In this document: positions 1,047 through 63,676 of the stretch, one piece after another
Numbering within the stretch: position 1 is the first letter of the stretch
Layout of the letters: every line of letters starts with the position of its first letter
Assembly (NCBI GenBank): GCA_964019335.1
Contig: OZ025693.1
Span: forward strand, 1 to 64,000
Direction of reading: 5' to 3'
DNA: 64,000 nucleotides
DNA from: Diplonema japonicum
Lineage: Eukaryota > Protista > Euglenozoa: Diplonemea
Notes under the pieces: model-generated
Database searches by the model: none
Told to the model about the DNA's origin: nothing
What the model saw: only the letters and a program-made list of their open reading frames with translations
Position numbers and translations under genes: made by a program

Positions 1047-1090
1047 AATTCGATAAATTTTCAGTGAGCAGGGGGGGCTCGACTGTTCAA
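1047..1090 (-). mobile_element. ~45-bp 3'-terminal relic of LINE family 1
   Basis: cgataaattttcagtgagcagggggggctcgactgttca matches 43948-43990 (cgataaaatttcagtgtgcatgggggtgctcactgttca); retains the 3' hairpin; flanked by T-tracts on the minus strand. Confidence 0.7.
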
Positions 1091-2200
1091 GAAAAAAAAA
1101 GAAGAAGAAGAAAAAAAAAAAAAAAAAAAAAAAAAAGGAATAAATGAATAAACAAATAAAATGAAAGAAAGTAAAAAGAATACCAGATCAGAAAAAGAGG
1201 GGGAAAAAAAATTAATAGTCAATAAAATGTTTTTTTTTATTATTGCTTGGATGGAGGCGGGAGTGGGGAGAGTGAAAAGGGGCAGGGGAGGGGGAATCCA
1301 TGGATGAAGCATTTTTTTTTAAAGTTTTTTTTTTACCCCCCCTTTTTTTTTGACCTAAACAAAAAAATGCTTCAAAATTTAACTGAATTGACCTTCCCCC
1401 CGTGCCTTTTTTTTCTTCTTTTTTTTTTTTCCCTGCCCTCTTTCTCTCTCTTTTTCTTTTTTATCCTTTCCTTTTGCTGCGTTCTCCCTATCAAATTAAC
1501 AACCCCCGCCCTATTAAAAGCCCAAAGAAAAAAAAAAAAAAAAAAAAAAAAAAGCGATGTTAAGCGCAAATCTGTAATGGTGCGAGGGGGGAAAGATGTC
1601 TGAGAAGGTCTCGTAAAGGGAAAAAAAAAAAAAAAAAACAAAAAAAAAAAAAAAAACAAAAAAAATAAGAAACCACAAAGAAATCTCACACACCCCGAAT
1701 GAAGGGAAGAAAGAAAGAATAGGTCTTCCAGGTTGAGAAAAATGAGGGGAAGGGAGACAGGAACGAAAGACAGGTAATGAAGTCGGAGAAAAGAAAGAAG
1801 GGAGGGGGGGGGGGGGGGGGAGGGGAGTAGTGAAAAAGAGGAGAAATAGGAGAGAGAGGAGTACGCTCTTACGCAAAAAGAGGGGTAATGAATAAAAAAA
1901 AAAAAAACCCTGGAGTGCACCTGAAACAGTCGCCGTTGTTTTTTTTTTTGTTTCCCCCCCATTTTCTTTTATAAATTTTTTTATTGTTTAAGGTTCCTGA
2001 ACTTATTACGAAAATAAATCCCAATACCACGGTATTTCAAAGATTCGGCCAAACATAATTCTTTATGACTATATATGTCTTTGTTGTTCGCACGAGCAAA
2101 AAAGGGTTTTTAAAAAGCTGCAAAAAACTTCTTGCGCGGAACAAGTTGCACAAAGTTATAAAATCATTTTTTGAAAGATAAATATTTGTAACAAAAAAAC

Positions 2201-2231
<31 letters not shown>

Positions 2232-2277
2232 TTTCAGGTAAGCAAAGACGGGTTATCTTTTTTAAAATTTTGCAATC

Positions 2278-2322
<45 letters not shown>

Positions 2323-2483
2323 CTGTAATCGAAGTGAATGAAATCCTTTTCCCTCTTTCCCTTTATTTTTAAAGTTTTTTTTTATATACCCGCCCCCTTT
2401 TCCCCTCCTCTTTTCTCCTTTTTTTTGATGATTACATAAACAAGAGGTTTCTGTCCATCATAAAAAAAAAAAAAAAAAAGGGT

Positions 2484-2546
2484 TTCATGTCACTGCACAA
2501 AGTCAGACTAGAGTCAAACTCAACAGGGTTTTCATTCCCTGCCGAC
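2484..2546 (-). pseudogene. Isolated fragment of cytosolic LSU (28S-type) rRNA core
   Basis: Minus strand TCGGCAGGGAATGAAAACCCTGTTGAGTTTGACTCTAGTCTGACTTTGTGCAGTGACATGA aligns without gaps to the conserved eukaryotic LSU segment TCAGCGGGGAAAGAAGACCCTGTTGAGCTTGACTCTAGTCTGG..GTGAAGAGACATGA (recalled from memory); no full rDNA context. Confidence 0.75.
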
Positions 2547-2625
2547 AGTTTCATATCGTCCTATGAGGAGGCAAAAAAAAAAAATTACACACTTAATTTA
2601 AGGGAGAGGAAGGGAAAGGAGGAGG

Positions 2626-2669
<44 letters not shown>

Positions 2670-3236
2670 AGCAGGTATTTCTGCATAGCAATGGTGCCAA
2701 GCCAAAGCTAAGACTCAGAAATCGGAGAAAAAAATTGTCCTCTTTTTCCTGTCACCTCCCGGGAGGGGAAAAGTTTATGGGAAAAAAAAAAAAAAAAAAA
2801 AATGATGAGTAACAAACAACAAGGTAACATAACATAAGAGTCGTAGTTTCGTTTGTTTTGCACACACAAATCCTGAGACAAGTGCAGTGCGCTGCCACTA
2901 CTCTTTTTTTTTTTTTTTTTTTTTTTTCTTTTTTTTTTTTTTCATCTTCGGCAGTGTGTTGTTAAAATGCTCTTATTGCAACTTTTTTTAAATCAATGGA
3001 GCCACACCTTTATTCTTTTCATTCTTTTTTTTCTCTCTCTTTTGGCCGGTTACGACCCACACAAAAAGGGGAAATGGGGAAAGCTTATTATTTTTTTTTT
3101 TTGTTGTTGTTGTTATTTCTAGAAAAGAAAGAAGAGAAGAGAAAAAAAAAAAAAAAAAAAAAAAAAAAGCCCTAAAATCGGGTTTTTTCTTTTTTTTTTT
3201 GCATGTTTGTCCTTTCGACCCCCGTACAGGTTTCGT

Positions 3237-3275
<39 letters not shown>

Positions 3276-4832
3276 TGGACAAACTATACAAAGAAAAAAA
3301 TAGCAATAGTAATAATAAAGAGCCACATATCAACACCACGGGAGGGAATGGAAGGAAAAAAAAAAAGACACTTGTGATGCCTGTTGGGCATGTCAGGTTT
3401 GCATTCTTTTAACTCTCAGACTCTCCTCCCAGGCCTAAAAGAACAAAAAGGAAAAAAAAAAAAAGAAAAAAAAAAAAAAACTGAATCAACAAGCGCTACA
3501 AAATCCTCTTGTCCTCCCTTCCCCTTCCTATCTCATTCTCTGCTCTCCCTTAGGAGGGGAAAGGCCCAGGCCCGATGTGCCAATTTGGTGAGAAATATGT
3601 ACCCTTCCCCCCCCCCCCTTTTTTTCCCCCAATTTTAGATTGAGGGAAAAATGAGAAAATGGGGTTTAAAAAAACAAAGAAAGAAAGGTGATCTGATCCC
3701 AACCCCCCCCCCCCCCCCCCCCCACTCCTTTTTTTTCATCTGCGAAACCAAGGTCCTTTGCGCTATCTCAGGGTTTTTAGCAACTCCTTTCTTTTCCCCT
3801 CCCAAAAAAAAAAAAAAAAAATACACCGTACCTACCCTACGTTACAAGGCTGGAGGGAGGAAGGTGAACAAATGGTGCTTAGGGAGAGCAAAAAAAAAAA
3901 AAAAAAAAAAAAAAAAGAAAAAGATCACTGGCTTTTTCACAAGGACGCTTGCAGTGACATAGGTTTTACATTTACAACATTTTTTTTAACTAAAAAAATG
4001 ATATTCTCTTTTGTTTTTTAAAAAAAAAAGGCAGCCTCCTTTTTTTCTCCCCCCCCCAGTAACTATGTTTTTCTTGGGCCCTATTAAGCAAAATGGCATC
4101 AAATGCAGTGTTGAGGTACAGCTGAGGCCAAAATGAAGGGCAAACAAGATAGTTACATGAGGTCAGCTCTCTTCTTTGAAGGACAGAAATAACTGCCAAT
4201 TCCCAAAAAAAAAAAAAAAAATGGGGCCATTTCTCTCTTTGATTCTCCTCTCCCCCCCCTTTTTTTTTGAAAAGGGAAAAAAAGGGGGGGGGAGAGGAGA
4301 AGGAAAAAGTGGACACCGTCTCGAGAAATCGTTTAAATATATTTTTTAGAAAAAGGGGAGGGTTCTGGCTCACACACTGGAAAGGAGGGGAGGGTGCTCC
4401 TTTCCTTACTGCCTTTTTTTCCCCCTCTTCTTTTTTTTTTTTTTTGCTTTTCCTTTTCGATGCAAGGCATTTCCCCTTCCAAATGCAAAGTGCAAATAGA
4501 ACAGGAAGGAAAAAGTGGGAGCGAGAAGTTAACATACAGAGATACATAAGCTCGTCAGAAAGAAAACGGGGAGTAGGGGGGAGAGGGAGGGAGGGGGAAT
4601 GGGAATAGAAAATAATAGTGTAAAAAAAAAATAAAAAATTAACAACTGACCTTTCAAGAAGAAAAAAAAAACGCTTATTCATTTCCTTCCCCCTTCTTCT
4701 TCTTCTTCTTCTTTTTTTTAAAAAATAAAATCGTTTATATATATATTTTTTTGTTTTGTTTTTCGTTTTGATTATTTTTTTTTGTTTTGTTTTGTTGTTC
4801 CCCCCCCTAAAAAAAAGTTCATGTTTCGTCGT

Positions 4833-5520
4833 TTAAGACCAAGCCATCAATGCAGTAATGACATGCTGAATAGTTTTTTTTTTTTTTTTTTTTTTTTTTT
4901 TGATTTCTCATTTCACACACCTCGTTGTCCTCTTTTGGCCTGAAATGAAATTCTTCCTCCTCTTCAGGGATGGGCACCAATGGAGGAAGATCGTGAAATG
5001 AACCCTCAGTGGATAGGATCGAGGCATCGCTCTCCCCGAGGCTGGTGTTCTGGTCAGTGCTGGCATCGGGGGAGTCCCAGGAGTGCAGGTCCCTTCTCCA
5101 CTGCCTGATGTGGTTGTCAAAGCGCCGCTTGCTAATGTTCCAGGAAGCACGAGGTGTCACCACATGCTCAGGAATGGAAAGGTCTCGCCGAAGAACGGGA
5201 ATCGCCTCTGAGTAGTTTAAGTAGCCAGAGGTTTGCTTGCCAAGGGAAATCTGCTTCTCTCTCTGACTCATCTTGTGCATCACCTGTTCGTAGGCAGTGG
5301 TGCCCTTCTCGGGTATTTCAAACTCCGGCAAAGGAGCCGAATCTGTCACTGCCCTCTCCCTCCTCACCACTTTGAGGTTCAGCCCAGGTACCTTCTGCCC
5401 GCTGTGCTTCTCCTTGTGCTTGAAGTTGAACTGGTGTGCGGTGGTGTTACCCACATTGTCGTTAATCGCCCCAAGAGGCATCTTCCTCCCCTTACCCTTC
5501 TGTGCTGTGGTGCCGACCAT
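4833..5520 (-). CDS. SLBP: Histone RNA stem-loop-binding protein (SLBP)-like; one intron 4866-4920
   Basis: SLBP RNA-binding domain QREKQISLGKQTSGYLNY..TPRASWNISKRRFDNHIRQWRRDLHSWD; a 55-nt GTGTGT..poly-A..TTCAG intron gives the end EDNE/HVITALMAWS*. Confidence 0.85.
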
Positions 5521-5768
5521 TTTTTTTTTTTGTTGTGTTTTTTTTCTTTTTTTATTTTTTTTTTTTTCGCCAGACGGTCACAAAAAGTAATTTTCTTTTT
5601 TTGAAAATTATTCTTTCGCAATTTTTCTTCTTCTTCTTTTTTTTTTTTTTTTTTTTTTTGTTCACACGGAAGCATGGATCCATGCTTTGCGGATTTCCCT
5701 TTTCTTTTTTTTTTGTCCCTTCATTTTTTTCAGTCACGCATTTCTTCCTCGAGCGTTTTACAGCAAGG

Positions 5769-5950: not shown

Positions 5951-5951
<1 letters not shown>

Positions 5952-8950: not shown

Positions 8951-10164
8951 ACAGCTTTGGTGGTATTTTTCTTTTTTTTTTTTTCTTTTTTTTTTTTTAA
9001 TGCCCGCAGCATTTTGATCATTATTAAAAAAAGCGTAGCTAGGCAGTTAGACACACGCGCATTGTGTTCGTCCATAAAAAAAAAAAAGATTTGTTTAGAC
9101 ATTAACACTGTAGGTAGAAGCGACCTAGAAGGCAACCTTTAGAAGTAGTTTTCATATGTTTTGAGCCCAGTTTTAGGGCTTCTCGTATGCCACTCCAAAA
9201 AAGAAGGCATGAAACCATCCCCCCCCCCCTTGTTTTTGTTTTTTCTTCTTTTTTTGGCCAAGGTCGCAAAAGACAGAAGAGAGAGCAAAAAAAAAAAAAA
9301 AAAAAAAAAAAAAGAAGAAACCAAATCACAATGAAAAGTGGTAGCAACGGCTTTTTGTTCTTTGTGAGGCTTTCTAAGTGAAAGCCGCCAACAGTCGTTT
9401 ATCTCGCACAGCCAGGTAAAAGGAAAAAGGAGGGAATGGGGGAAAAAAAAAAAAAAGTAAGAGGCAAGGGAGCCAGTGGCAGTTGTTTGCACACATACTT
9501 GCGGGGTCCCCTCTTCATTTTCCAGAATAATAAATAAAAAAAAAAAACGGTAAAGAAACTCTCTTGTTTGCTGGTTTTTTTTTTTTTAAATTCCCCGACT
9601 CGAGTAAAAGGAGAGGAATGATTTCTTTTTGTTTTTTTTTTTCTCCCGCCCCTGAAATTTCACTCCCCCCTTTTTTTTCTTTTTTCTGTTCCCTGATGGA
9701 AGACCTTTTTTTTCTTCCTCCCATTTTAAGTAATTTTCCTCCCGCCCCGAGGGGATGGGAATTAAAAAACAAAAAGAAATGCGGAAAAAAAAAAGAAAGT
9801 ACACGAAAGGTAGGGAACCGCCCCCCCCCCCCCCCCCCCCCCTCCCCCCCAAGAGGCTGAGGTAAATACAGTATTGTTGCTTTTCCTCACAGAAGAAGAA
9901 GAAGTAGAAAAAGTACGATTCTTTTTTTTTTTAAATATTCTTGTGACTTATTGCTCATGTCCAATAACATTCATCACCCGTAACTCCCGGTCTGATAAAT
10001 TCGGGACTTTCATCAGCCAGTCACTTTTCACTCAATTATTTGTAACGGTACATAATGTTCGATACCCCTCCCCCCCTTTTTTTTCCCAAAGGAAAAAAAA
10101 AAAAAAAAAAACTATTTTTGTAGAATATATCGCAGTAAAAAAAAAAAAAAAAAAAAAAAAAAGA

Positions 10165-10476
10165 ATGGGGCTTTGATTGCAACACTAGGTGGCGTTAAGC
10201 GTGCAATGAAGCACGAACTACCTACTTGATTACAGGGGGCGCTCCTCGGCCGAGCAGTAGCTTCTTCTGCGTTCCGCGTCGTGTCCTTAATGCGTGCGGT
10301 GTGCTCAACCCTAGCCAGGGCGTCCCGGGTAACCAAGATTCTGCTGCCTGTTCGTCACCCTGAGCATCTGCGTTACGTTCTTCCACTCGGGCGCTACCGG
10401 TGATGACCGACGAGGAGGTCAACAGCGAACAACACATCTGATGTTTTTCTTATATTTTCATGTTATCCCCACCACC
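10165..10476 (-). mobile_element. SINE-like repeat, copy 1 (tail type A, 15-bp internal deletion)
   Basis: Near-identical to 58488-58815; same 5' boundary as the copies ending at 58815 and 59794; followed by a T-tract on the minus strand. Confidence 0.85.
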
Positions 10477-19649: not shown

Positions 19650-21039
19650 TTTCCCTTCTTTTTTCCTCCCCACGCCCTCTCGCCCTCTTGGACGTGATGT
19701 GGTTATTGTGTGAAATGAAGAAAAATGTAAAAGAAAAAAAAAGGCTGAGAGGTGGGGAGGGGAGGGGAAAAAAAGTGAACGGGGGGAGAAAAAAAAATAT
19801 AACGATACATAAAGGGTTGGGGGGAAATGGGCTCAGACACTTGCCTCCCCTCGGAGACTGGTTTCCCCCCCCCCCCCCCCCCCTTTTCTCTTCGTCTTTC
19901 CTTCTACTCTTTCGCATCATTATAACGTAATAGCCGGTAGGGCTTGCTGGGATGTAAGGGGCCCTCACTCTCTTGAATACACCTAGGATACTTATCCCAG
20001 CACCACCTTTCCCTTTCTTTTCCCTCTGTTTCTTCCCTTTCTTTCTCTTTGACTTCCGCTTCTTTCCTCTTTTTTTTCTTCTTTTTTTTTTTCAATGCAG
20101 CAGCATTTCCTGGATGGAAAGAGAAACAAAAAAAAAAAAAACCCATAGTATAATTTGGAAAAGTAAAAAAAAAGAGAGGAAAAAAAAAAAGAGAGAAATA
20201 AAGCAGAGTTATAAAGAAAAGGGGAGAGGTGGAAAAAAAAAAAAAAGTGAACAGGTACAAAGAAAAAAAAGAAGAACCTTATTTTTAAAAACAATTTTCA
20301 GGAAGAGAAAAAACTGGGGGGGGATCCTTGATACAAAAACAACAACAAAAAATTTAAACAATAAAAAATAATATAACTGAATAAAAAAAATTTCTTTACT
20401 TCCTTCCTCCCCCCCCCCCCCCCCCCACTTATGTATAACTTGTTAAAATCAATTTTTTTCTTCTGCCATTAAAAAAGGATGCCATATTTTCTCCCCCCCT
20501 GATGACACGAAAGCAAGGGGAACAAGAGAAAGGGGGGAGGGGGGACAGAGAAGCAGACTCAAGGGAGGGAGGGAAGATAAAAATACACCAATAAGCATGG
20601 AACTTAATAGTATTAAGGAGGGCGGTAAAAAAAAAAAAAAATGAGAAGAAGGAGCCTGCTCGCACTGGAGGGGTAGGGAGGGGACTGCACTCACTACGAT
20701 TTTCTCGCAAGATGTGCACCATTTTTTTTTTTCTCGCCAGAGGGGAGGGCGGGAGGCAATGATGGCAGGAGAAGTACAAAAAGACAGCCGCTGTGGGGAC
20801 CCCCCTACCGGGGAGGCTAGGTACGGAGATGGGGAAAGAAGAAAAAAAAAAAAAAGTTGTTTTACAAAAGGAAAAAAAAAAAGCCCCTCTTTTTTCAAAA
20901 AAAAAAAAAAATACCAGCTTTTTTTTTCTTGCGAAATTTCTTTGAGAGAAAAGGTGAGGGAAAAAGGAACGAAAGTCTTTTTCTTTTCTATTTCTTTTCT
21001 CTTGTTAAACGCGTAGCCTTGCGTCAGCCTTAAAAAAAG

Positions 21040-21162
21040 AAAGAAAAGAGGAACTAACCGTTGTTTGTACGTGCCGGGTAAAACCTGGAGACGTTTGTCA
21101 ACCCGAAACACGTTGCCAACGTTCCCCTTTTGTTTAGACAAGTCAAAGACTCGTTCTTGCAA
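21040..21162 (-). repeat. ~120-bp dispersed repeat, inverted copy of 55969-56090
   Basis: Reverse complement of gcaagaacgagtctttgacttgtctaaacaaaaggggaacgttggcaa..cacgtacaaacaacgg..agttcctcttttc. Confidence 0.85.
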
Positions 21163-21396
21163 AAAATAAATGCAGTCGTAAAAATACCTTATTTCCCCAT
21201 TAGAAAAACCATCTCTCAAAAAAAGAAAAAGAAAAAAAAAAAGCAGCCGTGACGGAGACAAAAAGAAATAAAAAGGGAAATATAAAAAAAAGGGACAGAT
21301 TGGCAAAACGGAACTTTTCTTTTTCTCTCTTTTTTTTTTTTTTTTCCCCGCTTCCTTTTCGTTCTTATTTTTTTGTTGATGATGATGAATGAAAAG

Positions 21397-32374: not shown

Positions 32375-33712
32375 CTATTTAAGCAGCCTGGCGATTCTTG
32401 AAGCGAGCTTTGGGCTCGTGAATATTTTGCGCACGCTGAGAAGCTCCCGCCGGGAGAAGGCGTTCAAAGCACTGGTGGTCGAGAGGGCTTTGGCGATCTT
32501 CCCAATCATGGAGGTGTTCTTCTGTTTGTAAGCCTCGACAGCGAGGCCTGAAAGGGTCTTCCCATCGTATTTTGAAAGGGGAACCTTGAGTGCAAATGAA
32601 GTGTTATACGACACCTTCATAGCTGCCATAGCGGTGAAGGCAAGGAGGCGCGGGGGGAGGGGGTCGGTTTTGTTCCTGTGGTAAAGATGAGAATCGATTA
32701 GTTTAACGGAAGGGTACCGCCCGGCAACGCCGTACGACCAGATGATGTTGCAGAGCTGCTTGTCAGTGGCGGCACTTAAAATGCTCTCACACGGCGCCAC
32801 CCCAAAGACAGACTCATGATAAACCCCAACACACGCGAAACCCCATACAATGTTTGCATAGTCCAAAGGCTTATCCATATACATTCTTGCAAAATATGCA
32901 ACATGATTATAAAACCCAGGGGCTCTGATACGCGCGTTGCCAAGCGCCCACATCAGAATCGGAAGATGCACGTCGGGGTTGCACTCAACAGCAAGCTGTT
33001 CCATCAGCATGGTCCACACCTGGTGATCCTGTGCTGTCTTGACCTTACTATAAGCCCATGAAATGAGTGCGATGTCTTTAAAGGTGCATCCTTGTAGACC
33101 AGTTCGCAGTAATGAGTTGTTGAAGTTATTTCCGACGAAGTTGGCGGACAGCTTCACGCTGCAGTGTATCAGCGATGCTAGCTCACGGCCGGAATGGGAT
33201 GCTCGGAGGGGTTCCTGCAGCAATGATGCACCACGTTCCCGCAAACGGTGTTTTGAGTATGTCTCGAGCAACCGTGTTACATCACTCGACGAGAAGGATC
33301 TAACCTTCGGAAGGGTTAATGACGGTGCGATGCAATGCGGAGGCTCGCGAAGCTTCAACAATGAATCAAGGACACTGACACGATCGGGGTGTGAAAGCGT
33401 CATACCAGGTATTCTGGATGTTGCAAAGAGAATCAGTCTTTTCGTGTCCTCGTTTTTAGCTTCGTTTCTGTATTTCACGGCCAAGCTGAGGCTTATGCTT
33501 AGGTCGTAAGGCGACAGGCTGCCCGAGGATTCGTATCTCCTTGCTGCTGTGAAAGCATCGGGGATGCTGTTGACGGACCCCCATTTCGCTTCTCTTTTCT
33601 TCCTCTCCACGATATTTTTTGTCCTCGTCTCCTCTGTGCTGTGTTGATGTGCCTTAAGCACCTCGTCCACTATTCTCCTAGCAACGTCGCTGGGGGTGAA
33701 CGTGCTCGGCAT
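32375..33712 (-). CDS. Helical-repeat (OPR/FASTK-like) protein, probably organellar RNA-binding
   Basis: Recurrent motifs DIALISWAYSKV, LPILMWALGNA, DYANIVWGFACV, QLCNIIWSYGVA spaced ~35-38 aa apart. Confidence 0.65.
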   Translation of the reverse strand: MPSTFTPSDVARRIVDEVLKAHQHSTEETRTKNIVERKKREAKWGSVNSIPDAFTAARRYESSGSLSPYDLSISLSLAVKYRNEAKNEDTKRLILFATSRIPGMTLSHPDRVSVLDSLLKLREPPHCIAPSLTLPKVRSFSSSDVTRLLETYSKHRLRERGASLLQEPLRASHSGRELASLIHCSVKLSANFVGNNFNNSLLRTGLQGCTFKDIALISWAYSKVKTAQDHQVWTMLMEQLAVECNPDVHLPILMWALGNARIRAPGFYNHVAYFARMYMDKPLDYANIVWGFACVGVYHESVFGVAPCESILSAATDKQLCNIIWSYGVAGRYPSVKLIDSHLYHRNKTDPLPPRLLAFTAMAAMKVSYNTSFALKVPLSKYDGKTLSGLAVEAYKQKNTSMIGKIAKALSTTSALNAFSRRELLSVRKIFTSPKLASRIARLLK

Positions 33713-33799
33713 TTGTTCAATGTTCTATCTCCATCGTTCTTTGTTCTCTTTTTTATTTTTTTCTTCTCCCTCCTTGGATCTTTGGGGTGGGGGAGATAC

Positions 33800-33849
33800 G
33801 AGATAAAAGGAGGCCAATGTTGGTGGCGCCCTGCACAAGCACTGTGTAC
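33800..33849 (-). mobile_element. Degenerate 3'-tail relic (type B) of the SINE-like repeat
   Basis: aaaggaggccaatgttggtggcgccctgcacaagcactgtgtac resembles aaaggaggccggtgttggcggcgccctgcacaagaactgtctac (48444-48487). Confidence 0.7.
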
Positions 33850-34791: not shown

Positions 34792-35127
34792 CTCAAAGTA
34801 CAGGACAAGCCCCCCGCTAGAGGGCCGCCCTATGGGAGGGGGGGGTCTATCTGTTAATACTCCCCTTCTGGAGCATTGCTTTCATCCCGATTGAAGCCGT
34901 GAGCGTCTTGTGGAGTCGTGTGATGCGGTCCCGCTTGTAGTCGGCTTTCAATTCCATTAGCTTGTCGTGCGTGGAGCGGGTGGCGAAAATAGGCCTCCTG
35001 GAGAAACCAATAGCTGCCTTTCCTCCAATGGCGATGAGGGACTTCACTCTTTTTCTCTCGTCCGCTGGGAAGGGGCGTCGCTTCTTCCGTGCCCTGCATG
35101 CTGTATTTATCTTTACGATGAGAGCTT
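34792..35127 (-). mobile_element. 5'-truncated LINE family 2, 3' end, copy 1
   Basis: Near-identical to 63301-63635; encodes ..PFPADERKRVKSLIAIGGKAAIGFSRRPIF.., homologous to the C-terminus of the 44-kb RT ORF (AFPANAKSRVHTLRHLGGPTAHGYDRRPLF). Confidence 0.85.
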
Positions 35128-39651: not shown

Positions 39652-39846
39652 GATAATTCCGGTGTGCGGGTGGGTGCTCACCGTTCATGGAGAAATTCAC
39701 ACTAATCGGGGAGAAGAGTGGTCTCCTGTCGTAGCCTCCTGTCTCCTGTTGTCTGGCCTCAAGATGTCGTAGGTACACATTGTCTTTGCGTTGGCGGGGA
39801 AAGACAACATTCTGAATACGTCCTAAGATGTATCGCATCCTTCTGG

Positions 39847-39848
<2 letters not shown>
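39652..39848 (-). mobile_element. Internally deleted, diverged 3' fragment of LINE family 1
   Basis: Encodes RMRYILGRIQ..GYDRRPLFS and shares the 3' hairpin region with 43948-44280. Confidence 0.8.
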
Positions 39849-43852: not shown

Positions 43853-43947
43853 TTTTTTTTTTTTTTTGTTACTTTTTTTTTTTTTTGTGATAATGTGAAT
43901 ATTGTCTTTTTTAAAGAAAAAAAAGAAAGAAAACAAAAAAAAAAAAA

Positions 43948-45951
43948 CTCGATAAAATTTCAGTGTGCATGGGGGTGCTCACTGTTCAGGTAGAAATTCA
44001 CACTAATCGGTCACCGTTCTGCGGTTGCTGTCTGGTGCCTGCGGTGGCTGTTTGTCGCGATGAGATGGACGGCATCTGGGCGAGAAACACTGCTTGGAGT
44101 CGTGCTAGGTAGGGGGGGGTTTGGCTCGAGGAGAAGAGTGGTCTCCTGTCGTAGCCGTGTGCCGTCGGGCCCCCAAGATGTCGAAGGGTATGCACCCTTG
44201 ATTTGGCGTTGGCGGGGAAGGCTGACCTTCCACAGCGTGCTGAGCATTTCTGGATGCGACCCAAGATGTATCGCATCCTTGCGGCCTTCTCCGTGAGCAG
44301 GTCCTGATCGTCGAGGGGACCTATGAGTGACCGGCGGGTGGTCTGCTCATAGTCTATGGCGAGTTCCATTGTAGTGACGGAAGTTTTCTTCTTACCATCG
44401 TACCATCGTAGGCCTCTTAGCCACTTGAGGACGTTCTTCAGATGAAAGGTCAGGACCGCGCCTGACGCCCCGTTCGCCTTCAGCAACGCTTCCGTCGGAA
44501 CATCATGTTGCCTCCCTGTCGTTACCTCATCCCAAGGGTTGGAGGTGAGCACTCTCTTGCTTTTTTCCGCTGCTCTGGCGTCACGGACCGTCACTACTTT
44601 CAGGAGGTATTGTTGCACCATCCTGGCACGTTCTTTCCCTGCTTTGTCGGCTCCTCTTGGGACTATCCCGTGAAGGGCTGTGGCAGCTGGGAGGCCTTCT
44701 CGCTTCACCTCTGCGTATTGCTCGCTTTCCAACACACTCCTTGCCGGCTCGCACTCCCACAGTGCATGCTCCGTCATGCTGGTCGTTGTCTGGGACCGGT
44801 GGTCGCAAACGTCACACGCTAATGCTGGGTTTTCCACACCAGGGCCATCCAATTTTCTCCCCCACACCCTCGGGTGAGTCGTGAACACTGCACCACTAAT
44901 GATGCGCCGCAACCTAAAGGACACCAACGGTCTCCGGGCCTGGAGCTTTTTCCACCAATAGTTCGTGGACGGGCACGCCCCTGCCTCCATCCCCACGAAG
45001 GTTGATCTCTTCTCGATCAGCCTCTTCGCAACTGCCGGTCTGATGGCTTGCCTCACTTTGTGAGCCACCGCTGTATCTCCGTGCAGGTCGGCCACAAAGG
45101 ACCATCCCTTCCCCAGAAAGGGGAGCCATCTGTTCCGCAGGACTCCAATCGGACCCATCACCTCATCGTCATCACGGTCCTGGTATAGACCAATGATCTC
45201 ACCAACACGCTGCCGCAAACGCGGAGAGGCCAGGCTCTCCCGGACCAAGCTGTTTATCGTTCCGTAGATGACCTTCGACAGCGGATGTGCCGTATGCCCT
45301 GGCAGCAGAACGCTCAGTACAGACACGGGGTTTCTCATCCCGAACTGGGGGCCCCACAGGGAGACCACTGCCGCTGTACACATCTTCTTCAGCTGGTCGT
45401 CCGAGGGTGCCGCATACGTTGCTCCGTACAGACACGACGGTAGCACAGTGCTCGTCAACATCGTCGACTTGTTCTCAAACCCTAGTGGCAAAGCTCCGAG
45501 ACGGGTCAGGCGTCCCTCCGCTGCGTCCAGCTTGTCCAGCCTGTGATTCCCATCCATGCTCAGGTTCACGCCAAGTGATTTGATCTCCCCAGCTACCTTG
45601 AACGAGGAACCGGTGCATACTAAACTAGGGCCGATCTCGTTTTTCGTCGAGAATCCCTGCGACTTCTTTCCGTTGAGGCGCATCTCTGTCCGGTCCCCGA
45701 ACTCGATCACCTTGTTGGTCGCCCTTGTCAGGACCTCCGCTAAACGCGCCAGGAGGTACACGTCATCCGCGTACGAAAGTGACCAAGCTCCTGGTACTTC
45801 CGTCATCACGCACTTCACCATCACCGACACCAAGGCGTTCACCATGATTACCGAGATGGGGCACCCTTGCAGGATACCATTCGTCACTCGGAACTCTGAG
45901 CCAACACCTGTCGGGAAACGGAATCGCCGCTTCAGGTTCGCATACATATGG
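43948..45951 (-). mobile_element. 5'-truncated non-LTR retrotransposon (LINE family 1) with an uninterrupted partial RT ORF
   Basis: GILQGCPIS and YADD RT motifs, zf-RVT-like CDVC..EHALWEC, C-terminal WLRGLRW..MELAIDY; ~650 codons open to the stop at 43998; short 3'UTR with hairpin, then T-tract. Confidence 0.92.
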
Positions 45952-46470
45952 AAAAAAAAAAAAGATTGTGTGGGTGAGGGAGAAGAGAGAAAGGAGAGGG
46001 AAAAAAAAAAAAAATGAAAAGAAAAGAAGAAGAAAAAAAAAAAGGAGTAAGGAGGGTGCGAAGGGGGGAGGGGACCGTACAGGAAAAGAAATGGGAGCAA
46101 AAAAAAAATTCTTTTTTTGGGGGGAGTTTTTATTCCTTCTTTTTTTCTTCTTCTCTACATTTTCTTTTTTTTTTTCTCCCTCCCTTTTTCGTCTTACTTT
46201 TTTTTACCCCCCCTTCTCTCCTCCATAAAAAAAGGAACATCATTTGTTCCTCCCCCTTTTTTGTGTTATATTTTTCTTCCTTTTTTTTGTTTTTGCATTT
46301 TTCTTTTTTGTTTTTTTTTTTTTTTTTTTCTCCCGTAAAGAAAAGGGGGTGGGAGGTAGAGAAAACAACGAGATGACACAACTGGAAAAAAAAAAGAAAA
46401 AAAAATTAAAAGTGCCCTTTCGTGTGTGTGGTGGGGAGTATCTGTTAATGGGGCAAAAACGGGGAAGGGA

Positions 46471-47303: not shown

Positions 47304-48347
47304 TTAGTTGGTACGCCCTCTCCCGCCTCTGCCACCTTTGCATTTTTTTTTCTCTTTTTTTTTTTTTTTTTTTCCAATACCTTTGTAACCCTTTCCAGAC
47401 TTACCGCCTTTCCCACCTCTACCCTTTCCTCCCTTGTTCTTCCTTTCGTACTCCTCTACTGTTTTGGAGCCGAAGGTGGCACAGTCCATGGCGTGCTGGG
47501 TTTCTGCGGCAACCTTTTCGACCTTCTCCCTGTTGTTGACGTCATATGTGAGGGTGTCGAAGAAGGAGCTGTCCTTTCGGTACTTTGCGTCGGCTTCTTT
47601 GGTCTTATCCGCCTGGTCTTCTTTCTCAAACTTCGACGATGCTGCGAAATCGAACTCTTCTTTGAATTCGTCGAAGTCGATGCCCTTTCCTTCTGCTGAG
47701 AATTCCATCCCGGTGTGCGTAGAATAGTTCATGTAGCCACCCTTCCCCTTTTTCCCTCCCTTCTTGCCTCCCTTTTTCCCTTTTTTACCCTTTCCACCCT
47801 TGGAGTAACTGCCTTTGTGTCCTGAGTTCTTACCACCGTAAAAGGGTTGCATGTATTGCTGTTGCTGCGGGACGAAAGGTTGATGTTGGTGTGATTGGTG
47901 GTGGTGGTGGCCCAGCTGCTCAGCCATGACAGCCTTCATGTTGACCCCTCCGGTGCTGTTAGACTGGATTCCCTCGCTGACCCTGCTTTTCCCAGGGAGG
48001 GCTTTACCTGCGCTAAGGATGGCGGGGTCCTTGGGAGGCTGGTCCTTGTCATTGAAGACGGTGAGGTCCTTAATGTCGCCACCCTTGAAGATGATGTAAT
48101 CGTACACTGTGTGTGTTTTTTTTTTTTTTTTTTCCAATACCAGTATCCGATTCAGGGATGTGTGTGCGAGCTTCCCTGTTCTCCGTGCCGAACATTTTCA
48201 CGTTCACCAAGGCCACGGTGTTCTCAGTTGGGTTGATTTTCGACAGGATTCCTTTTTTTTTTTTTTGAGGGGGTGTTTTGCCATACCTTCATATCTAATG
48301 TTGCATTTGCTTATAATAGATAATTTATGCCCCTGTGCCATCGCCAT
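47304..48347 (-). CDS. SCD6: Scd6/LSM14/RAP55 translational repressor; introns 48252-48286, 48107-48140, 47336-47380
   Basis: Spliced Lsm domain LSIISKCNIRYEGIL..FGTE..YDYIIFKGGDIKDL; FDF, FFD and TFG boxes; KGG/RGG tail. Confidence 0.92.
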
Positions 48348-48436: not shown

Positions 48437-48640
48437 ATGAGTTAAAGGAGGCCGGTGTTGGCGGCGCCCTGCACAAGAACTGTCTACTTGATTACAGGGG
48501 GCGCGCCGCGGCCGAGTTGTAGCTTCTTCTGCGTTCCGCGTCGTGTCCTTTATGCGTGCGGTGTACAGCTCAACCCCAGCCGGTGCGTCCCGGGTAACCA
48601 AGATTCTGCGCTCGTGCAGTTTGCTGCCTGTTCGTCACCC
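48437..48640 (-). mobile_element. SINE-like repeat, copy 2 (tail type B, 5'-truncated)
   Basis: Near-identical to 59474-59677; ends ~90 nt upstream of the SCD6 ATG. Confidence 0.85.
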
Positions 48641-55572: not shown

Positions 55573-55968
55573 TTATTATTATTTTTTTTTATTCCTTGGG
55601 GGGTGTATATGAAAATGAAGAAATCTAGAGGAAAGGGGGGGTGGTGGTGGTGAAAAAAAAAAAAGAAAATCACAGAAAAAGAGAGAAAAACTGAACCGTA
55701 GTAGAGGGGGAAAAAAATGGGGGGGGGTGAATAAATTGTGCTGTTTTTCTGGGTGTTGTGTAGAGTTTTTTTTTTTTCATTTTTTTTTTTTTTTTTCGCT
55801 TGAGCAAAAGAAAAATAGTTGAGGCGAAAAGAGAAGCGGGGGAAAAAAACCATAATTGCAACCTCTATTTTCTTTTTTTTTTTTTTTTTTGCTCAGGGGA
55901 AATAGTAGTTTTGTCCACGCACTTAATCTTATGGATGGTCGTTTTCTCTCTTTTTTTTTTTTTTTTTT

Positions 55969-56090
55969 TTGCAAGAACGAGTCTTTGACTTGTCTAAACA
56001 AAAGGGGAACGTTGGCAAACGTGTTTCGGACAAACGTCTCCAGGTTCTACCCGGCACGTACAAACAACGGCCAGTTCCTCTTTTCTTTTT
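55969..56090 (+). repeat. ~120-bp dispersed repeat, inverted copy of 21040-21162
   Basis: Direct sequence match; flanked by T-tracts on the plus strand. Confidence 0.85.
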
Positions 56091-56780
56091 TTTTTCCCCC
56101 CTTTTTTTCCCCCCCCATTTGTGCCCTGAGGTCCTGGGAGGCAGGACACCCGGCATTACCCGTTGGGTAGTTCCACTTAATAATCAAAATTCTTGATGCA
56201 TGAGAGCGCTGCTTGCAGTGAATGAAGAGTATCGTACCAGTGAAAACGTTTCCTTTCCCCCCCTTGCCTTGCATGTTAGGCAACGCACCCAAAAATTAAC
56301 TTAAGACTAAAGAAAAAAGAAACTTCTTTTATTCCCACATCCTGAGCTTGCAGGATTTGCGGAGAAAAAAAGTTGCATAAACAAAAAAAAAAAAAAAAAC
56401 AAAAAAGGAACGTCATTTTCTTTTTAGCACTTAGTAACGATAACAAGAAGAAGAGAGAGAGAAAAAAAAGAAACTTTTTAGTTCCTTCTTTCTTTAGATG
56501 AAACGGGGGGGATTCGCCCCCCCCCCCCCCCCCCCCCCCTCCCATCGATAAATCACACGACCCGAAAAACTATCTGGTGGTGCTCGCGGAAAAAAGAAAG
56601 GAAGGAAAAAAAAAAAAAACGGAGGAGGGAGGAAAAAAAGAAAAAAAAGAAAGCCCGTCCGATCCCCATCCCCACTTTAGCTTCCGGTTTTCTTTTTCTT
56701 TTTTCTTCTTCTTCTTTTTCCTTTACCCCTTAAGAAAGCACCGAAGACTCACGCGCAAAAAAAAAAAAAAAAAAAATAAA

Positions 56781-58327: not shown

Positions 58328-58487
58328 CATGGTGCAGTGTGACCCGGAGGGAGGGTCAGTCTGGTGGGTATTTTGGTCCGCTCGCGATTCGACCGCTTTT
58401 ATGGATTCTTTTGCAAATCTCGTATAAAAGAAAAATATGGAATGGAAAAAACGTAAGATAAGAGAAAAAAAAAAGAAGAAAAAAAAA

Positions 58488-58815
58488 ATGGGGCTTTGAT
58501 TGCAACACTAGGTGGCGTTAAGCGTGCAATGAAGCACGAACTACCTACTTGATTACAGGGGGCGCTCCCCGGCCGAGTTGTAGCTTCTTTTGCGTTCCGC
58601 GTCGTGTCCTTAATGCGTGCGGTGTGCTCAACCCTAGCCGGGGCGTCCCGGGTAACCAAGATTCTGCGCTCGTGCAGTTTGCTGCCTGTTCGTCACCCTG
58701 AGCATCTGCGTTACGTTCTTCCACTCGGGCGCTACCGGTGATGACCGACGAGGAGGTCAACAGCGAACAACACATCTGATGTACTTCTTATATTTCCATG
58801 TTATCCCCACCACCT
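58488..58815 (-). mobile_element. SINE-like repeat, copy 3 (full length, tail type A)
   Basis: Matches 10165-10476; 76-aa ORF. Confidence 0.85.
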
Positions 58816-59473: not shown

Positions 59474-59794
59474 ATGAGTTAAAGGAGGCCGGTGCTGGCG
59501 GCGCCCTGCACAAGAACTGTCTACTTGATTACAGGGGGCGCGCCGCGGCCGAGTTGTAGCTTCTTCTGCGTTCCGCGTCGTGTCCTTAATGCGTGCGGTG
59601 TACAGCTCAACCCCAGCCGGTGCGTCCCGGGTAACCAAGATTCTGCGCTCGTGCAGTTTGCTGCCTGTTCGTCACCCTGAGCATCTGCATGATGTTCTTC
59701 CACTCGGGCGCTACCGGTGATGACCGGCGAGGAGGTCAACAGCGAACAACACATCTGATGTTTTTCTTATATTTTCATGTTATCCCCACCACCT
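59474..59794 (-). mobile_element. SINE-like repeat, copy 4 (full length, tail type B)
   Basis: Body matches copy 3; 3' ~50 nt match copy 2; 77-aa ORF. Confidence 0.85.
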
Positions 59795-60288
59795 GGAAGA
59801 AAAAAAAAAGAAAGAAAAAAAAAAAGTTTAAAATATCTTTTTGCAACATTTGTTATTTGGTATTTATAGCTATCTAAAACAAAGAATTATGCTGGCGGCG
59901 CTCTATGATACAAAAGCCCACTTTATTGGGAACGAAAGGTTTTGTAACCGTTGCTCAAAACAAAGAATTACCTTGCTCGCCCCCCCCCCCCTTTTTTTTC
60001 TTTCATCTCTTTTTGAACCTCAGAGATTGTGTTCACAGGTAACAACTCGGCCGAACCACTACTTTTTTTTCCCCCCCTTCGTTTTCTTTCTTTTTTTTTT
60101 TTTTTTTTTTTTACACAAAGTGTTTAAATAAAAAATAAAAAAATAAAAAAAAAGCATTTCCTTTCTATTCTTTTTTTTTTTTTTTTTTTGTGCAAATCAC
60201 CCTTCCATTTTCCTTTTATTACCTGGTATAGCACATGAAGAGACACACAATTCATAAAAGCAGTAGTGCTCTAAATAAAAAAAAAATA

Positions 60289-61935
60289 CTATAAACTCTT
60301 CGACCGCAGCCTCGCAATATCAATTTGCTGCACCATAGTAGAATAGTCATACTCGGGGTCATAGGAAGCTGGTTCAAGAACTTCGTAATTTGCCAGGCCG
60401 AACTTTCGCAGGCTGACCGGCCCGCGGGATGTCATCTCAAGCAACCTCCAACAGTGCTGCAGCAAGGGCCGGTAAGAAGATCTTTGAGAAATGCGGATAA
60501 AAGCACCATTCGCGTTACCACAGGTAGTATGGTTGTCCATCACCTTGAACGCTTCACGGTACTCTGCAATGTCAAGAGCAAGGTCTTCAGAAGAAGCAGT
60601 GTAAGGGAGCAAATCGTGAAGAACCTCCTCTGTTCCATCAGGCTGTTGCACCCTGTCCAAAGGGATGCAAACAAATTGAGGTCCCAGGGAATCGACAAGA
60701 GAAGGCGACAACACCACGTTGGCCCCCAACCCTTCCCCTAGCGAGGTTAGGCGTCGTATGTATTCTTGTATCCTTCCGCCCAGCACGAACATCGCGCAGC
60801 GATGCGAGTCAGACCGGACATGCCCAGCGGAGTTTTGTTCCTGTGTTACCGTTACGACAGCACCGTTGCATTCTTCTTTGAGTGCCAGTGCTGCTTTGCA
60901 CGCGACTTCTCCGTTTTGTGCAGCAGTTCTCTCGCTCCCCCGCCATAGGATCAGAGCGCTACCGTTGAAGACATCTACCACCGTTCCCTTGAAAGCTTCG
61001 GACACCAAGCACACGGCGGTCACGAACTGCTTCATGGATGTCACGCGTACCGATTGCCGCGACTTCACCGCCACACCCATCACCGTCAGGCACGAGGATT
61101 GCACGTTAAACTTCAACGCTGTAAACCGCAGGACCTCCTTTTGGTACAACGGGTCCAGTGGTGAGATATTCCCCGGCGGGTCATCGGACAAAGGCGAGCT
61201 GCTCAACGCCACAACATTCTCCGGTTTGTAAGTGAAAGCAGCATCTGATATAAATGGACGCAACACATCGCAAGAGGAAATGAGCTTTGTCAGCGCGAGG
61301 CATTCAGGGAAGTTGGAAGTGATGTGCGAGGGGCTGAGGGGCTTGTTCTGCCTAATATTCGTCGCTGCAGCATCGATCTGTTTCTGAATGTATGTCACGC
61401 GTTGAAACGTGGCCTGCAAACGAATATTTGTCCCGAACAGGACAAGGTTCACAACAAGAAGGAAGACCCTGTTCATGACCACTTGTCCTGTGGAAGCCTC
61501 ATCGCCGCATTTACATTCGCTGGGACCACCACCGCACTCAATACCCAGTTCCTCAAGTAACATAGTACCAAACGAAACAAACGCTTGAAACACCAACGCT
61601 ACCGTCCCCACCACAGTCTGCCCGTCGTAGAACATATATCTTGCCACACCCAGGTAGCCCACTATGAAAGAGTCGAGGCCTTGCCGTGAGGACCGGCAGT
61701 GCAATGTGACCCAGTGGAATATTTGGTAGCAGAACGGGAATATCAGTGAGCTGTAAGAGCATAGGTGGGAGTTCCCTGTTTTGTACTGATGGGCGGTGCC
61801 TGCCACTGTTATGATGGCATAGACCCCGACAAACACTGCGCACGCCATATATATGTCCTCAGATGTATCCAGGGAGACAAAGAACTGCGCTAAGACGAGG
61901 CATGCAAGAACAATGCTCGTTATCGATTCGTTCAT
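60289..61935 (-). CDS. Multi-TM membrane protein with degenerate class III nucleotide-cyclase-like domain
   Basis: About 6 hydrophobic segments, LRPFI linker, then GTVVDVFNGSALILW..ACKAAL..VLGG..IRRLTSL cyclase-fold pattern lacking the metal-binding aspartates. Confidence 0.6.
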   Translation of the reverse strand: MNESITSIVLACLVLAQFFVSLDTSEDIYMACAVFVGVYAIITVAGTAHQYKTGNSHLCSYSSLIFPFCYQIFHWVTLHCRSSRQGLDSFIVGYLGVARYMFYDGQTVVGTVALVFQAFVSFGTMLLEELGIECGGGPSECKCGDEASTGQVVMNRVFLLVVNLVLFGTNIRLQATFQRVTYIQKQIDAAATNIRQNKPLSPSHITSNFPECLALTKLISSCDVLRPFISDAAFTYKPENVVALSSSPLSDDPPGNISPLDPLYQKEVLRFTALKFNVQSSCLTVMGVAVKSRQSVRVTSMKQFVTAVCLVSEAFKGTVVDVFNGSALILWRGSERTAAQNGEVACKAALALKEECNGAVVTVTQEQNSAGHVRSDSHRCAMFVLGGRIQEYIRRLTSLGEGLGANVVLSPSLVDSLGPQFVCIPLDRVQQPDGTEEVLHDLLPYTASSEDLALDIAEYREAFKVMDNHTTCGNANGAFIRISQRSSYRPLLQHCWRLLEMTSRGPVSLRKFGLANYEVLEPASYDPEYDYSTMVQQIDIARLRSKSL

Positions 61936-62482
61936 AGTGGGACGCCACCTCCCCCCCCCCTCCCCCCGCCACACCCTTTGAAGGCAGTGAATGTGAGGAA
62001 TTTGACAGAAAAAGACAATAACCCCATTAAAGGACGAAGCGCTTAGATATCCTGCGATCAAGGGAAAAGTTTTAAAAAAAAAAAGGTTTTTTGCAAAGAA
62101 GAACGTAGTCCCAGCGACTTTTTTTTTTTGGCCCCTAAATTAAAAAAATCTCCGGGGAAAATCACCCGCACATGAGCGTCATCAAAGGGGGTTTTTTTTT
62201 TCTTTTTTTTCCAAGTGTCGTTCCATTGTTGCATGCTTCGAGGATGTTTAAATTTTTAGAAAAAAAGAATAACAAAAAAAAAAGTGGTGATCCAGATATG
62301 TATATTTCTTTGTTTTCCCCAAAACTCCCGTCCTTTAAATGGAAAAAAAAAAAAAAGAAACAAAAAAAATAACAGAACCGAATCTTTCCTGGGGGGGGGG
62401 GGGGGGAGCGGAAAATTTTTCATTTTTCCATAAGAATTAAGGGGGGGGGGGGGGTGTTATAAAAAAAAGTTAACTGCTAAAC

Positions 62483-63154
62483 TTATTTCGGAGGAGACGG
62501 TATGTGTTCAGAAGGAGAAGGTATTGTGTAGGATAGGCGGAAGTAGTACCGTTCACTGCTTTCTCCGTGGGTGCGCTTCTCAAGGGCGTCTTTAGAGGTG
62601 CGGAAGCCCTTTGTCAAGAGCTCCTCTTGAACGACAGTACGAAGAACCTCCACACCGCGTTCCTCAGCCATCCACTCGGGGAAGGTTTCGTGCAAAAAAT
62701 CTTCCTGTCCCGGGGGGATGTCGTAGGTTAAAGTCACTTTACCTTGATTAGCATCTTCAATCATGGACTGCATCACCCAGTCCACTGCACGAGCAGCTTT
62801 GCTTCGCACATTTGCGATCCACATTTTGTAGTGGTTGCAAACAGCGGTCTCCAAGGTCTTGTTGAAATCCCGGGCCTCTTCTTGGGGCGCCGCCGTTGCC
62901 TGTTGTAGTTGGTGTTGGTTCAGAAGGATGTTCTGCTGCTGGACGGCGAGGTCCTTTAGTGCCTGCATCGTGTCGCTTAAGGTTTCATCTTTCTCGATCC
63001 CCACCCCTTTCAACACCTCCATGCTGTATAACACCTCCGCCGCTTCACTTGGTTTCAGCCTGCGTATCAATGGGTTCAGCCGTCCGCTCCCCTCGCTCAC
63101 TTGTTTATCTTCACTTTCAGGCACATCAACACCTACATCTTCAACCTCAGTCAT
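62483..63154 (-). CDS. Hypothetical protein, 223 aa
   Basis: Clean ORF after an A-tract leader. Confidence 0.7.
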   Translation of the reverse strand: MTEVEDVGVDVPESEDKQVSEGSGRLNPLIRRLKPSEAAEVLYSMEVLKGVGIEKDETLSDTMQALKDLAVQQQNILLNQHQLQQATAAPQEEARDFNKTLETAVCNHYKMWIANVRSKAARAVDWVMQSMIEDANQGKVTLTYDIPPGQEDFLHETFPEWMAEERGVEVLRTVVQEELLTKGFRTSKDALEKRTHGESSERYYFRLSYTIPSPSEHIPSPPK

Positions 63155-63155
63155 T

Positions 63156-63188
<33 letters not shown>

Positions 63189-63300
63189 GTAAGCAAGGAC
63201 AAATAAAGCCCCCTTCAAGAAGAATGAAAAGAAAAGGGATTGGAAGAAGAAGAAAAAAAAGTAACCGAATAAGTAAGAGGATACAAAAAAATAAAAAAAA

Positions 63301-63676
63301 CTCAAAGTACAGGACAAGCCCCCCGCTAGAGGGCCGCCCTATGGGAGGGGGGTCTATCTGTTAATACTCCCCTTCTGGAGCATTGCTTTCATTCCGATTG
63401 AGGCCGTGAGCGTCTTGCGGAGTCGTGTGATGCGGTCCCGCTTGTAGTCGGCTTTCAATTCCATTAGCTTGTCGTGCGTGGAGCGGGTGGCGAAAATAGG
63501 CCTCCTGGAGAAACCAATAGCTGCCTTTCCTCCAATGGCGATGAGGGACTTCACTCTTTTTCTCTCGTCCGCTGGGAAGGGGCGTCGCTTCTTCCGTGCC
63601 CTGCATGCTGTGTTTATCTTTACGATGAGAGCTTTGATTCTGCGCGCCCTATCTTCCAGCAGGCCTCCCAAAGACT
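63301..63676 (-). mobile_element. 5'-truncated LINE family 2, 3' end, copy 2
   Basis: Near-identical to 34792-35127 and ~40 nt longer at the 5' side; ends ..CTTTGAG(T)n. Confidence 0.85.

Follow-up and report, generated by a model that had tools for sequence, protein, structure and literature searches.

Oligo(T)-ended retro-elements in T-tracts of the Diplonema japonicum genome and their link to gene direction and spliced-leader acceptor sites

The stretch of DNA analysed here (the window) comprises the first 64,000 nucleotides of contig OZ025693.1 of the Diplonema japonicum assembly GCA_964019335.1 (G000:C46:1-64000 in our numbering), and the subject of this study are the long and short interspersed elements (LINEs and SINEs) inserted in it. 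Nearly all long open reading frames (ORFs) of the window lie on the minus strand, and the host genes include those for a protein kinase, a radial-spoke protein and an SCD6/LSM14 protein. The window is rich in homopolymers: 367 runs of A or T with a length of 8 nt or more make up 7.7% of its bases and split near-equally on the plus strand into 170 T-runs and 197 A-runs. As these homopolymers swamped standard repeat finding, the repeats were identified by dust-masked self-BLAST, alignments and motif positions. The assembly that we searched for further copies comprises 62.5 Mb in 132 contigs and contains 250 LINE1 tails, 290 LINE2 tails, 829 SINE heads and 415 copies of the SINE tail module 1 (described below). 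Our first SINE and LINE1 samples consisted of best BLAST matches and were biased because the queries included flanking T; the counts were therefore redone on copies picked by motif alone. The later genome samples were short stretches, except for one full-length LINE1 on contig C69 that was read through.

An earlier note on this DNA, made from the letters alone, had listed ten insertions of three families, LINE1, LINE2 and SINE-like. Self-BLAST and motif positions showed that all ten are real repeats on the minus strand, lying within 2 nt of where they had been placed (flanks are given below as read on the sense strand of the element). The largest one is a 5'-truncated LINE1 of 2001 nt (43948-45948) that carries the C-terminal half of the reverse transcriptase (RT) and the C-terminal region, followed by a 50-nt 3' untranslated region (UTR) with a hairpin, and that ends ...ATCGAG. 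Directly 3' of it lies a T13 run (43935-43947), and the radial-spoke gene has its ATG 95 nt downstream of the LINE end, while T12 plus CCA sits directly on its 5' side (45949-45963), which can be read as the upstream half of a T-tract (target or target-site duplication) plus three extra letters. A LINE1-like fragment of 42 nt (1049-1090), consisting only of a tail that ends ...CACTGAAAATTTATCGAA, is preceded by a T-rich stretch and followed by T5-C-T27. The third member (39652-39848) is a divergent, 5'-truncated relative with 78-85% identity to LINE1, which has a T-run of at least 22 nt directly upstream and ends ...GGAATTATC-A8-G-T10. In this LINE1 relative (~81% identity; 39652-39664 and the second match in L057) ...ATC plus A8-10 was seen to pass directly into T10-13.

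LINE2 is represented by two 5'-truncated 3' pieces. The first (34792-35127) ends ...TACTTTGAG followed by TTTTC-T12 and has upstream only a T5, 7 nt from the 5' junction; the second (63301-63676), which lies 146 nt ahead of the ATG at 63154, has T6 upstream and T8-A-T7 downstream. Three of the five SINEs are full-length, namely the copy at 10164-10476, with tail module 1 (...AAAGCCCCATT) and then C plus T26; the 328-nt copy at 58487-58814, also with tail module 1, whose upstream T7 is followed by an A that forms an AG with the first G of the element (G1) and whose downstream flank reads T8-CTTC-T10; and the copy at 59475-59793, with tail module 2, a T-rich stretch plus CCA upstream and TATA-T7 downstream. 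A 5'-truncated SINE with tail module 2 (...TTTAACTCA, 48438-48640) has T9 upstream and T12-C7-ACTTCAG plus an A-rich leader downstream, and the SCD6 ATG (48347) follows at 90 nt. The last one is an old 51-nt fragment of tail module 2 (33799-33849), without a T-run after it and 87 nt upstream of the ATG at 33712.

According to the earlier note, every insertion ends in a hairpin followed by a T-run rather than poly(A). For the window this is mostly right, with two deviations: the fragment at 33800 has no T-run, and the LINE1 relative at 39652 ends ...ATC-A8-G-T10. The predicted 3' hairpins were only modestly better than those of shuffled sequences (z -1.1 to -2.3). Genome-wide, the absence of poly(A) was clear. 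The LINE1 end seen in the window as ...ATCGAG plus T13 was followed by at least 4 T in 19/20 motif-picked copies (median 12.5), and the LINE2 end, ...TTTGAG plus T-rich sequence, in 22/24 (mode 9-10). Thus 41 of the 44 copies carried at least 4 T, the three exceptions begin TA-T7, TTT and TTT, and poly(A) followed the terminus in 0/44. Among the best BLAST matches, T-runs of 4-49 nt were found after all 30 full-length SINE and all 30 LINE1 copies, and T-rich sequence came next in 19/19 further copies of SINE tail module 1. The 3' run lengths of LINE2 cluster at 8-11 nt and those of LINE1 at 13 and 15. Retrotransposition that depends on poly(A), as in L1, was rejected based on the 0/44 copies with such a tail, and a reversed orientation with a true poly(A) tail was excluded by the direction of the ORFs and the side of truncation. 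A Pol III terminator as the source of the T-run was likewise rejected, as the 6.65-kb LINE has TTTT within its own 3' UTR.

The T-runs were not confined to the 3' side. At all 11 true truncation junctions of LINE1, T10-24 lay upstream, with 0-3 extra letters (8 in one case) between the run and the element. Among the 13 full-length LINE1 5' ends, 12 had a T-run of 6-18 nt upstream, and in the 13th (L130) the spliced-leader (SL) exon lay directly upstream, with T-rich sequence before the exon. After the upstream T-run, the full-length LINE1s mostly continue with CCA, CA or A (two copies with none of these), and three copies have 9-17 further letters ending in ACCA between the T-run and the element. 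For motif-picked SINE heads, a T-run was present within 11 nt upstream in about 15/20. The statement that most insertions also have T upstream thus holds well beyond the window. Since the truncation points differ between copies, the upstream T of truncated copies does not come from the element RNA but from the target, and the elements sit in oligo(dT) tracts, with the T strand as their sense strand. They share with homopolymer-tract integrators the same homopolymer at both ends and no other duplication, the base being T and not A; the flanks are T-runs on both sides, and non-T letters occurred in flank duplications only in L033, L034 and L010.

To what class do these elements belong? The full-length LINE1 on contig C69 measures about 6.65 kb. 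Between a 5' UTR of roughly 65 nt and a 3' UTR of 50 nt it holds two reading frames, ORF1 with about 809 aa and ORF2 with about 1370 aa. ORF1 carries an OTU-like cysteine protease domain (Pfam E 2.5e-07; L125:564-1499 = G000:C69:330463-331398), which is unusual ORF1 content for a LINE, and a weak match to the coiled-coil-type ATG16 family that stays under the Pfam cutoff. Within ORF2, an apurinic/apyrimidinic endonuclease (APE) type Exo_endo_phos domain was found at residues 25-234 of the N-terminal part (E 7.7e-12, full-length copy L124); the window copy, being truncated, is without the endonuclease domain. RVT_1 was detected in the window ORF 43998-46100(-) with an E value of 3.3e-09 and in L036 with 4.1e-14, and the closest solved structure is that of human L1 ORF2p (E 2.5e-21, for the 58%-identical protein P0002). 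The LINE1 protein has a 100% identical match (P0001) from a transcriptome assembly, and among named proteins those of D. papillatum are the closest. Of 30 LINE1 copies, 12 did not reach the 2.2 kb available for comparison, with different breakpoints and a common 3' end; 11 of the 12 are true truncations, and L060 is a recombinant variant and not a truncation junction. Full-length 5' ends are few, with 13 compared to 250 tails. Fifteen of the best 40 LINE1 matches did not differ from the window copy at any of its last 701 nt (100% identity), which marks the family as young. Two LINE1 copies, L066 and L067, have identical flanks and lie 23 kb apart on C1.

LINE2, a second family, is seen as the 3' piece of a longer coding element. 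The SINE, 328 nt long, has one body with two alternative 3' tail modules, ...AAAGCCCCATT and ...CCTCCTTTAACTCA, and is short, non-coding, present in high copy number and 5'-truncated, as befits a SINE. Its tail modules bear no likeness to the LINE1 and LINE2 3' ends of the window, a comparison within which a LINE partner was not looked for genome-wide. No Rfam family reached its gathering score in the window, and none of relevance appeared at E <= 1 on the SINE region; hepatitis delta virus-like ribozymes and Pol III-type heads (tRNA, 7SL, 5S) were rejected based on this search. Of 19 copies of tail module 1 without a head, ten begin at positions 281-286, inside the loop of the 3' hairpin (L106, L108, L110, L113, L116, L117, L119, L120, L121 and L123). 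Reverse transcription therefore seems to abort often at this hairpin, leaving about 45 nt plus the T-run, and still shorter abortive events could lengthen T-runs. In three further copies (L139, L140 and L146) a long A-run and then a common ...CTTCTTTTTCA precede the SINE head, suggestive of a unit that is composite or arose by segmental duplication.

With RT and APE endonuclease domains and a series of 5' truncations against a fixed 3' end, the elements are recently active APE-type LINEs together with short non-autonomous elements, spread by target-primed reverse transcription, which agrees with their first description as retro-type insertions. Two known classes do not fit. Against the SL-gene-specific SLACS/CZAR/CRE type speak the APE endonuclease, the dispersed T-run insertions and the fact that the leader occurs only as a 5' fusion in a minority of copies. 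The RTE clade is defined by a single ORF, and LINE1 has an upstream ORF of about 809 aa.

The earlier note had also proposed that these elements may ride on polycistronic transcription or create new splice acceptors, and the 5' ends of full-length copies bear on this. SINEs start with A followed by GGTGG and LINE1s with (CC)A followed by GGGAAC. The A directly before G1 was present in 17/18 motif-picked SINE heads without leader and therefore belongs to the SINE, such that the T-run of the target, this A and the G together form a polypyrimidine tract plus AG. In 10 SINE copies the 3' end of the 39-nt leader is joined to GTGGTGG, in at least three further copies it is joined to GGTGGTGG, and in one full-length LINE1 (L130) the leader is joined at the point between CCAG and GGAACAC. 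Leader-carrying copies are a minority, about 1.5% of SINE heads. Because the junction falls at the end of the leader exon and right after the AG, it reflects trans-splicing and not a template switch onto unspliced SL RNA. The fusions, on at least 13 SINEs and one LINE1, thus show indirectly that the elements are transcribed in sense within RNA polymerase II (Pol II) units and that the front T-run plus AG is a working SL acceptor used by the cell; as far as sequence evidence goes, both parts of the proposal are borne out. Among the first 100 of 175 matches to it, the leader 3' end was also seen before at least six recurrent non-element sequences, for example GTCGTTCGTGTTC, GTACCCAATCTGA, GTATCGACCGTGC and GATCCCCTCCCCC; these, many of them near contig ends, are other leader-headed retroposons or SL RNA genes.

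Given the T-runs on both sides, the truncation series and the leader fusions, we consider it probable, albeit with considerable reservation, that the elements insert into T-tracts by target-primed reverse transcription, with a U-run of the RNA priming on oligo(dA), that they are co-transcribed in sense and that they bring their own SL acceptor. The APE endonuclease would nick the A strand of a dA:dT tract, and the freed oligo(dA) 3' end would pair with the U-run that follows the 3' hairpin of a read-through RNA and thereby prime the cDNA. The U-run in the element RNA would probably be copied from the donor's own downstream T-run. On the 5' side, the cDNA would be joined to the T strand with 0-3 extra letters, and the outcome would be T-runs of variable length on both sides without a recognisable non-T duplication. 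Copies in sense orientation would be co-transcribed, with full-length copies being trans-spliced for expression, and the downstream T-run would leave the polypyrimidine tract of the next gene intact.

Several points weigh against this mechanism or parts thereof. The A-strand nick, the pairing step and the U-run of the template are steps that we infer. In most full-length copies, 1-3 letters are retained ahead of the AG and the leader is absent, so the majority had templates other than trans-spliced RNAs. As even 5'-truncated copies have T-runs at both flanks, the target may account for much or all of the 3' T-run, which could indeed be wholly pre-existing; the modal 3' run lengths, in turn, could reflect either a templated tail or a measured cut. 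Two insertions do not look like a split tract. In L010, GGTAG-T6 is duplicated outside the T-runs on both sides, with T21 between the element end and the downstream copy of the duplication, which suggests that the inserted copy brought T-runs along at both of its ends. The LINE2 at 34792 has a 17-nt T-rich 3' run and almost no T upstream. Finally, the strict co-orientation with genes described in the following could be due to selection rather than to the insertion step.

The co-orientation that had been noted for the window holds for the ten listed insertions. It does not extend to every T-flanked element, as a short 135-nt element, SB (GCAAGAACGAGTCTTTGACTTG...CCAGTTCCTC), lies on the plus strand at 55961-56095, antisense to the gene cluster, and is a counter-example to strict co-orientation. 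A second SB copy, 93% identical to the first, was found by self-BLAST at 21032-21170 on the minus strand, and further copies are L015, L024, L055 and L058; relative to neighbouring elements the orientation of SB is mixed, with about five same and three opposite. Genome-wide, the longest flanking ORF at 60 loci shared the strand of the element in 35 callable cases and was opposite to it in 7, in a test that is crude, as it returned the wrong strand in 6/35 segments of the window itself. Once a strict threshold was set, requiring at least 250 aa and a margin of 1.5-fold, the flanking long ORFs were on the same strand in a ratio of 20:0. Of 10 same-strand downstream ORFs that were checked, five scored over the curated cutoff for a Pfam family of host type (Cullin_binding, 2OG-FeII oxygenase, HATPase, ankyrin with ubiquitin, and EGF_laminin), compared to a Pfam match in 0/7 opposite-strand ORFs. 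On contigs C1-C14, which carry 181 copies of the three families, neighbouring copies were on the same strand in 128/148 pairs and differed in 20, and neighbours from different families agreed in 77/83 (permutation p <= 1e-4). Co-orientation with genes can therefore be extended from the window to the genome. On almost every one of these contigs there was one orientation switch, with minus on the left part and plus on the right, which suggests two large divergent domains of gene direction per chromosome.

What could cause this bias? A- and T-runs are equally available on both strands, so the supply of targets does not explain the orientation. The cause is either an insertion step that responds to the direction in which transcription or replication runs, or an immediate loss of antisense copies. 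The latter is a form of an alternative in which insertion occurs in random orientation and harmful antisense copies are lost by selection. The equal frequency of A- and T-runs on the two strands, which offers targets in both orientations, is in line with it, as is the existence of some antisense copies, such as SB at 55961 and the 20 differing neighbour pairs. However, copies that are 100% identical over 701 nt as well as truncations that were dead on arrival are already co-oriented, and selection would have had little time to purge the others unless an antisense insertion kills immediately. We regard selection as the origin of the bias as unlikely, although it deserves serious consideration.

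A second alternative concerns the T-runs. Under pure target specificity, the RNA would have no U-run; the A strand would be nicked at a set distance, synthesis would start unpaired as in R2, and every flanking T would be pre-existing target or duplication. This would account for T-runs on both sides even of 5'-truncated copies. It also fits two duplications that extend one letter past the tract, T9C in L034 and T8G in L033, neither of which requires an added tail. The modal 3' lengths (9-10 for LINE2, 13 and 15 for LINE1) would suit a measured cut, as for RTE (PMC6007223). Yet it is difficult to reconcile with the T21 placed inside the non-T duplication of L010, with the SINE sample, whose 3' runs have about twice the average length of the 5' runs, or with the one-sided T-rich run of 34792. 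We consider this explanation rather unlikely, and more so than selection as the cause of the orientation.

Less likely still is a post-transcriptional U-tail, by which the RNA would be cut after ...GAG or ...CATT, uridylated by a terminal uridylyltransferase and primed on A-rich nicks. Euglenozoa carry several uridylyltransferases, and the 4-49 nt range of T-run lengths between otherwise identical copies is reminiscent of L1 poly(A). Such length variation of homopolymers may, however, come from slippage or assembly error, and a U-tail alone leaves the T-runs upstream of truncated copies unexplained, which makes this route improbable in our view. The idea that the T-runs are due to chance in a genome with so many A/T runs (the 367 of the 64-kb window), or to real poly(A) read on the wrong strand, is refuted by the 41/44 motif-picked copies in which at least 4 T begin with the very first base past the element and none with A, by the RT/APE reading frame, which fixes the sense strand, and by truncations that are always at the opposite end.

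Going beyond priming by a U-run at T-tracts, the elements might be viewed as gene mimics adapted to a polycistronic, trans-splicing genome. They would have T on both sides, an SL acceptor without a promoter and a design that leaves the next acceptor intact; they would prime by pairing of the U-run with oligo(dA), insert in a manner that reads the direction of transcription or replication, and seed, through abortive tail-only events, much of the 7.7% A/T homopolymer. This wider picture is speculative, and in its entirety we deem it doubtful. If it were true, the upstream half of the T-tract and the element's own first AG would provide cap and translation without a promoter, LINEs would have a second homopolymer priming mode, independent of polyadenylation, and direction-sensing insertion would explain the polarity along whole chromosome arms.

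Textbook LINE priming depends on poly(A) or a short 3' repeat, and the literature searched yielded no account of LINEs with T flanks. LINE-type genes are named in the genome paper of D. papillatum without detail on T flanks (PMC10161547). The nearest analogue, as a mirror image, is Zorro3, an L1-clade element of Candida albicans for which a retrotransposition assay identified poly-A tracts near genes as the specific integration sites and which has poly-A at both flanks (PMC3956500). Both have a homopolymer at both ends, no recognisable target-site duplication, APE plus RT domains and two ORFs. Zorro3 uses poly(A) RNA on a nick in the T strand, in contrast to the present elements with T on the sense strand, for which ordinary polyadenylation therefore cannot supply the pairing end. 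Moreover, its ORF1 has zinc knuckles where LINE1 has an OTU domain, and it offers no counterpart to the strict gene co-orientation and the 5' SL acceptor seen here. Human L1 and Alu share with our elements the APE nick at a homopolymer-rich site, the pairing of an RNA 3' homopolymer, the 5' truncation and the non-autonomous partners; L1 differs in that it nicks TTTT/AA, pairs its poly(A) with T and has its own promoter, whereas the sense-strand run is T in the present elements.

Other systems resemble the elements in single features. In plants and animals, RTE LINEs end in T-rich (GTT)n and Au-like SINEs in TTT or TTTTT; a hairpin is present at the 3' end, and on the sense strand a stretch of T adjoins the insertion site (PMC6007223). 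That stretch is about 5 nt long and lies about 10 nt upstream of a normal duplication, while here T4-49 abuts both ends, and RTE has a single ORF compared to ORF1 plus ORF2 of LINE1. For EhLINE1/EhSINE1 of Entamoeba histolytica, a T-rich stretch of 15-20 nt upstream is preferred and T-rich flanks hide short duplications (PMC2996970). The transcripts of these elements are polyadenylated, their flanks are T-rich and not pure T-runs as here, and, unlike for the present elements, no tie to gene orientation or trans-splicing has been reported. The Entamoeba elements use a restriction-like endonuclease. Closer to Diplonema, the trypanosomatid elements ingi/L1Tc and SLACS/CZAR/CRE are likewise euglenozoan LINEs in polycistronic genomes, and the SLACS/CZAR group has a connection to the spliced leader. 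Poly(A) forms the end of ingi and L1Tc, and SLACS/CZAR use a restriction-like endonuclease for insertion into SL RNA genes. The present elements differ from SLACS/CZAR in that they occupy T-runs anywhere and gain the leader only by trans-splicing of their transcripts.

Young APE-type LINEs that end in oligo(T) inside T-tracts are thus the mirror image of L1 and Zorro3, and raise the question of how the RNA acquires a usable U-run. As they are co-oriented with gene clusters and their own AG turns the target T-run into an SL acceptor, such elements may be expressible without a promoter, and leader-fused retrocopies are direct relics of the use of this acceptor. The arm polarity of three unrelated families offers a ready-made marker of gene-cluster direction and makes this system a test case for the coupling of insertion to transcription or replication. 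Experimental testing is feasible given the youth of LINE1 (identity over 701 nt).

It had further been suggested that the elements may use outrons, ahead of start codons, as a safe harbour. A long same-strand ORF does begin with an ATG 87-240 nt after the element end for four window copies and at 9/60 loci, typically with an A-rich leader in between. The sequence ahead of SCD6 is as the earlier note quoted it, and a real first exon, MAMAQGHKLSIISKCNIRYEG with GT after it, starts from the ATG at 48347. Nevertheless, element ends with a long-ORF ATG within 250 nt amount to about 17%, which is not clearly above the 10.7% of ordinary sense-strand T-runs of the window (40-250 nt), and the comparison of element ends with these T-runs revealed no clear preference for outrons over other T-tracts. 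In the host genes themselves, the ATG is typically preceded by a T-run, then a brief spacer and then an A-rich leader containing long A-runs (L031, L035, L036, L046, L053 and L056, and window-wide); since these A-runs lie directly before the ATG, many sense-strand A-runs are 5' UTRs.

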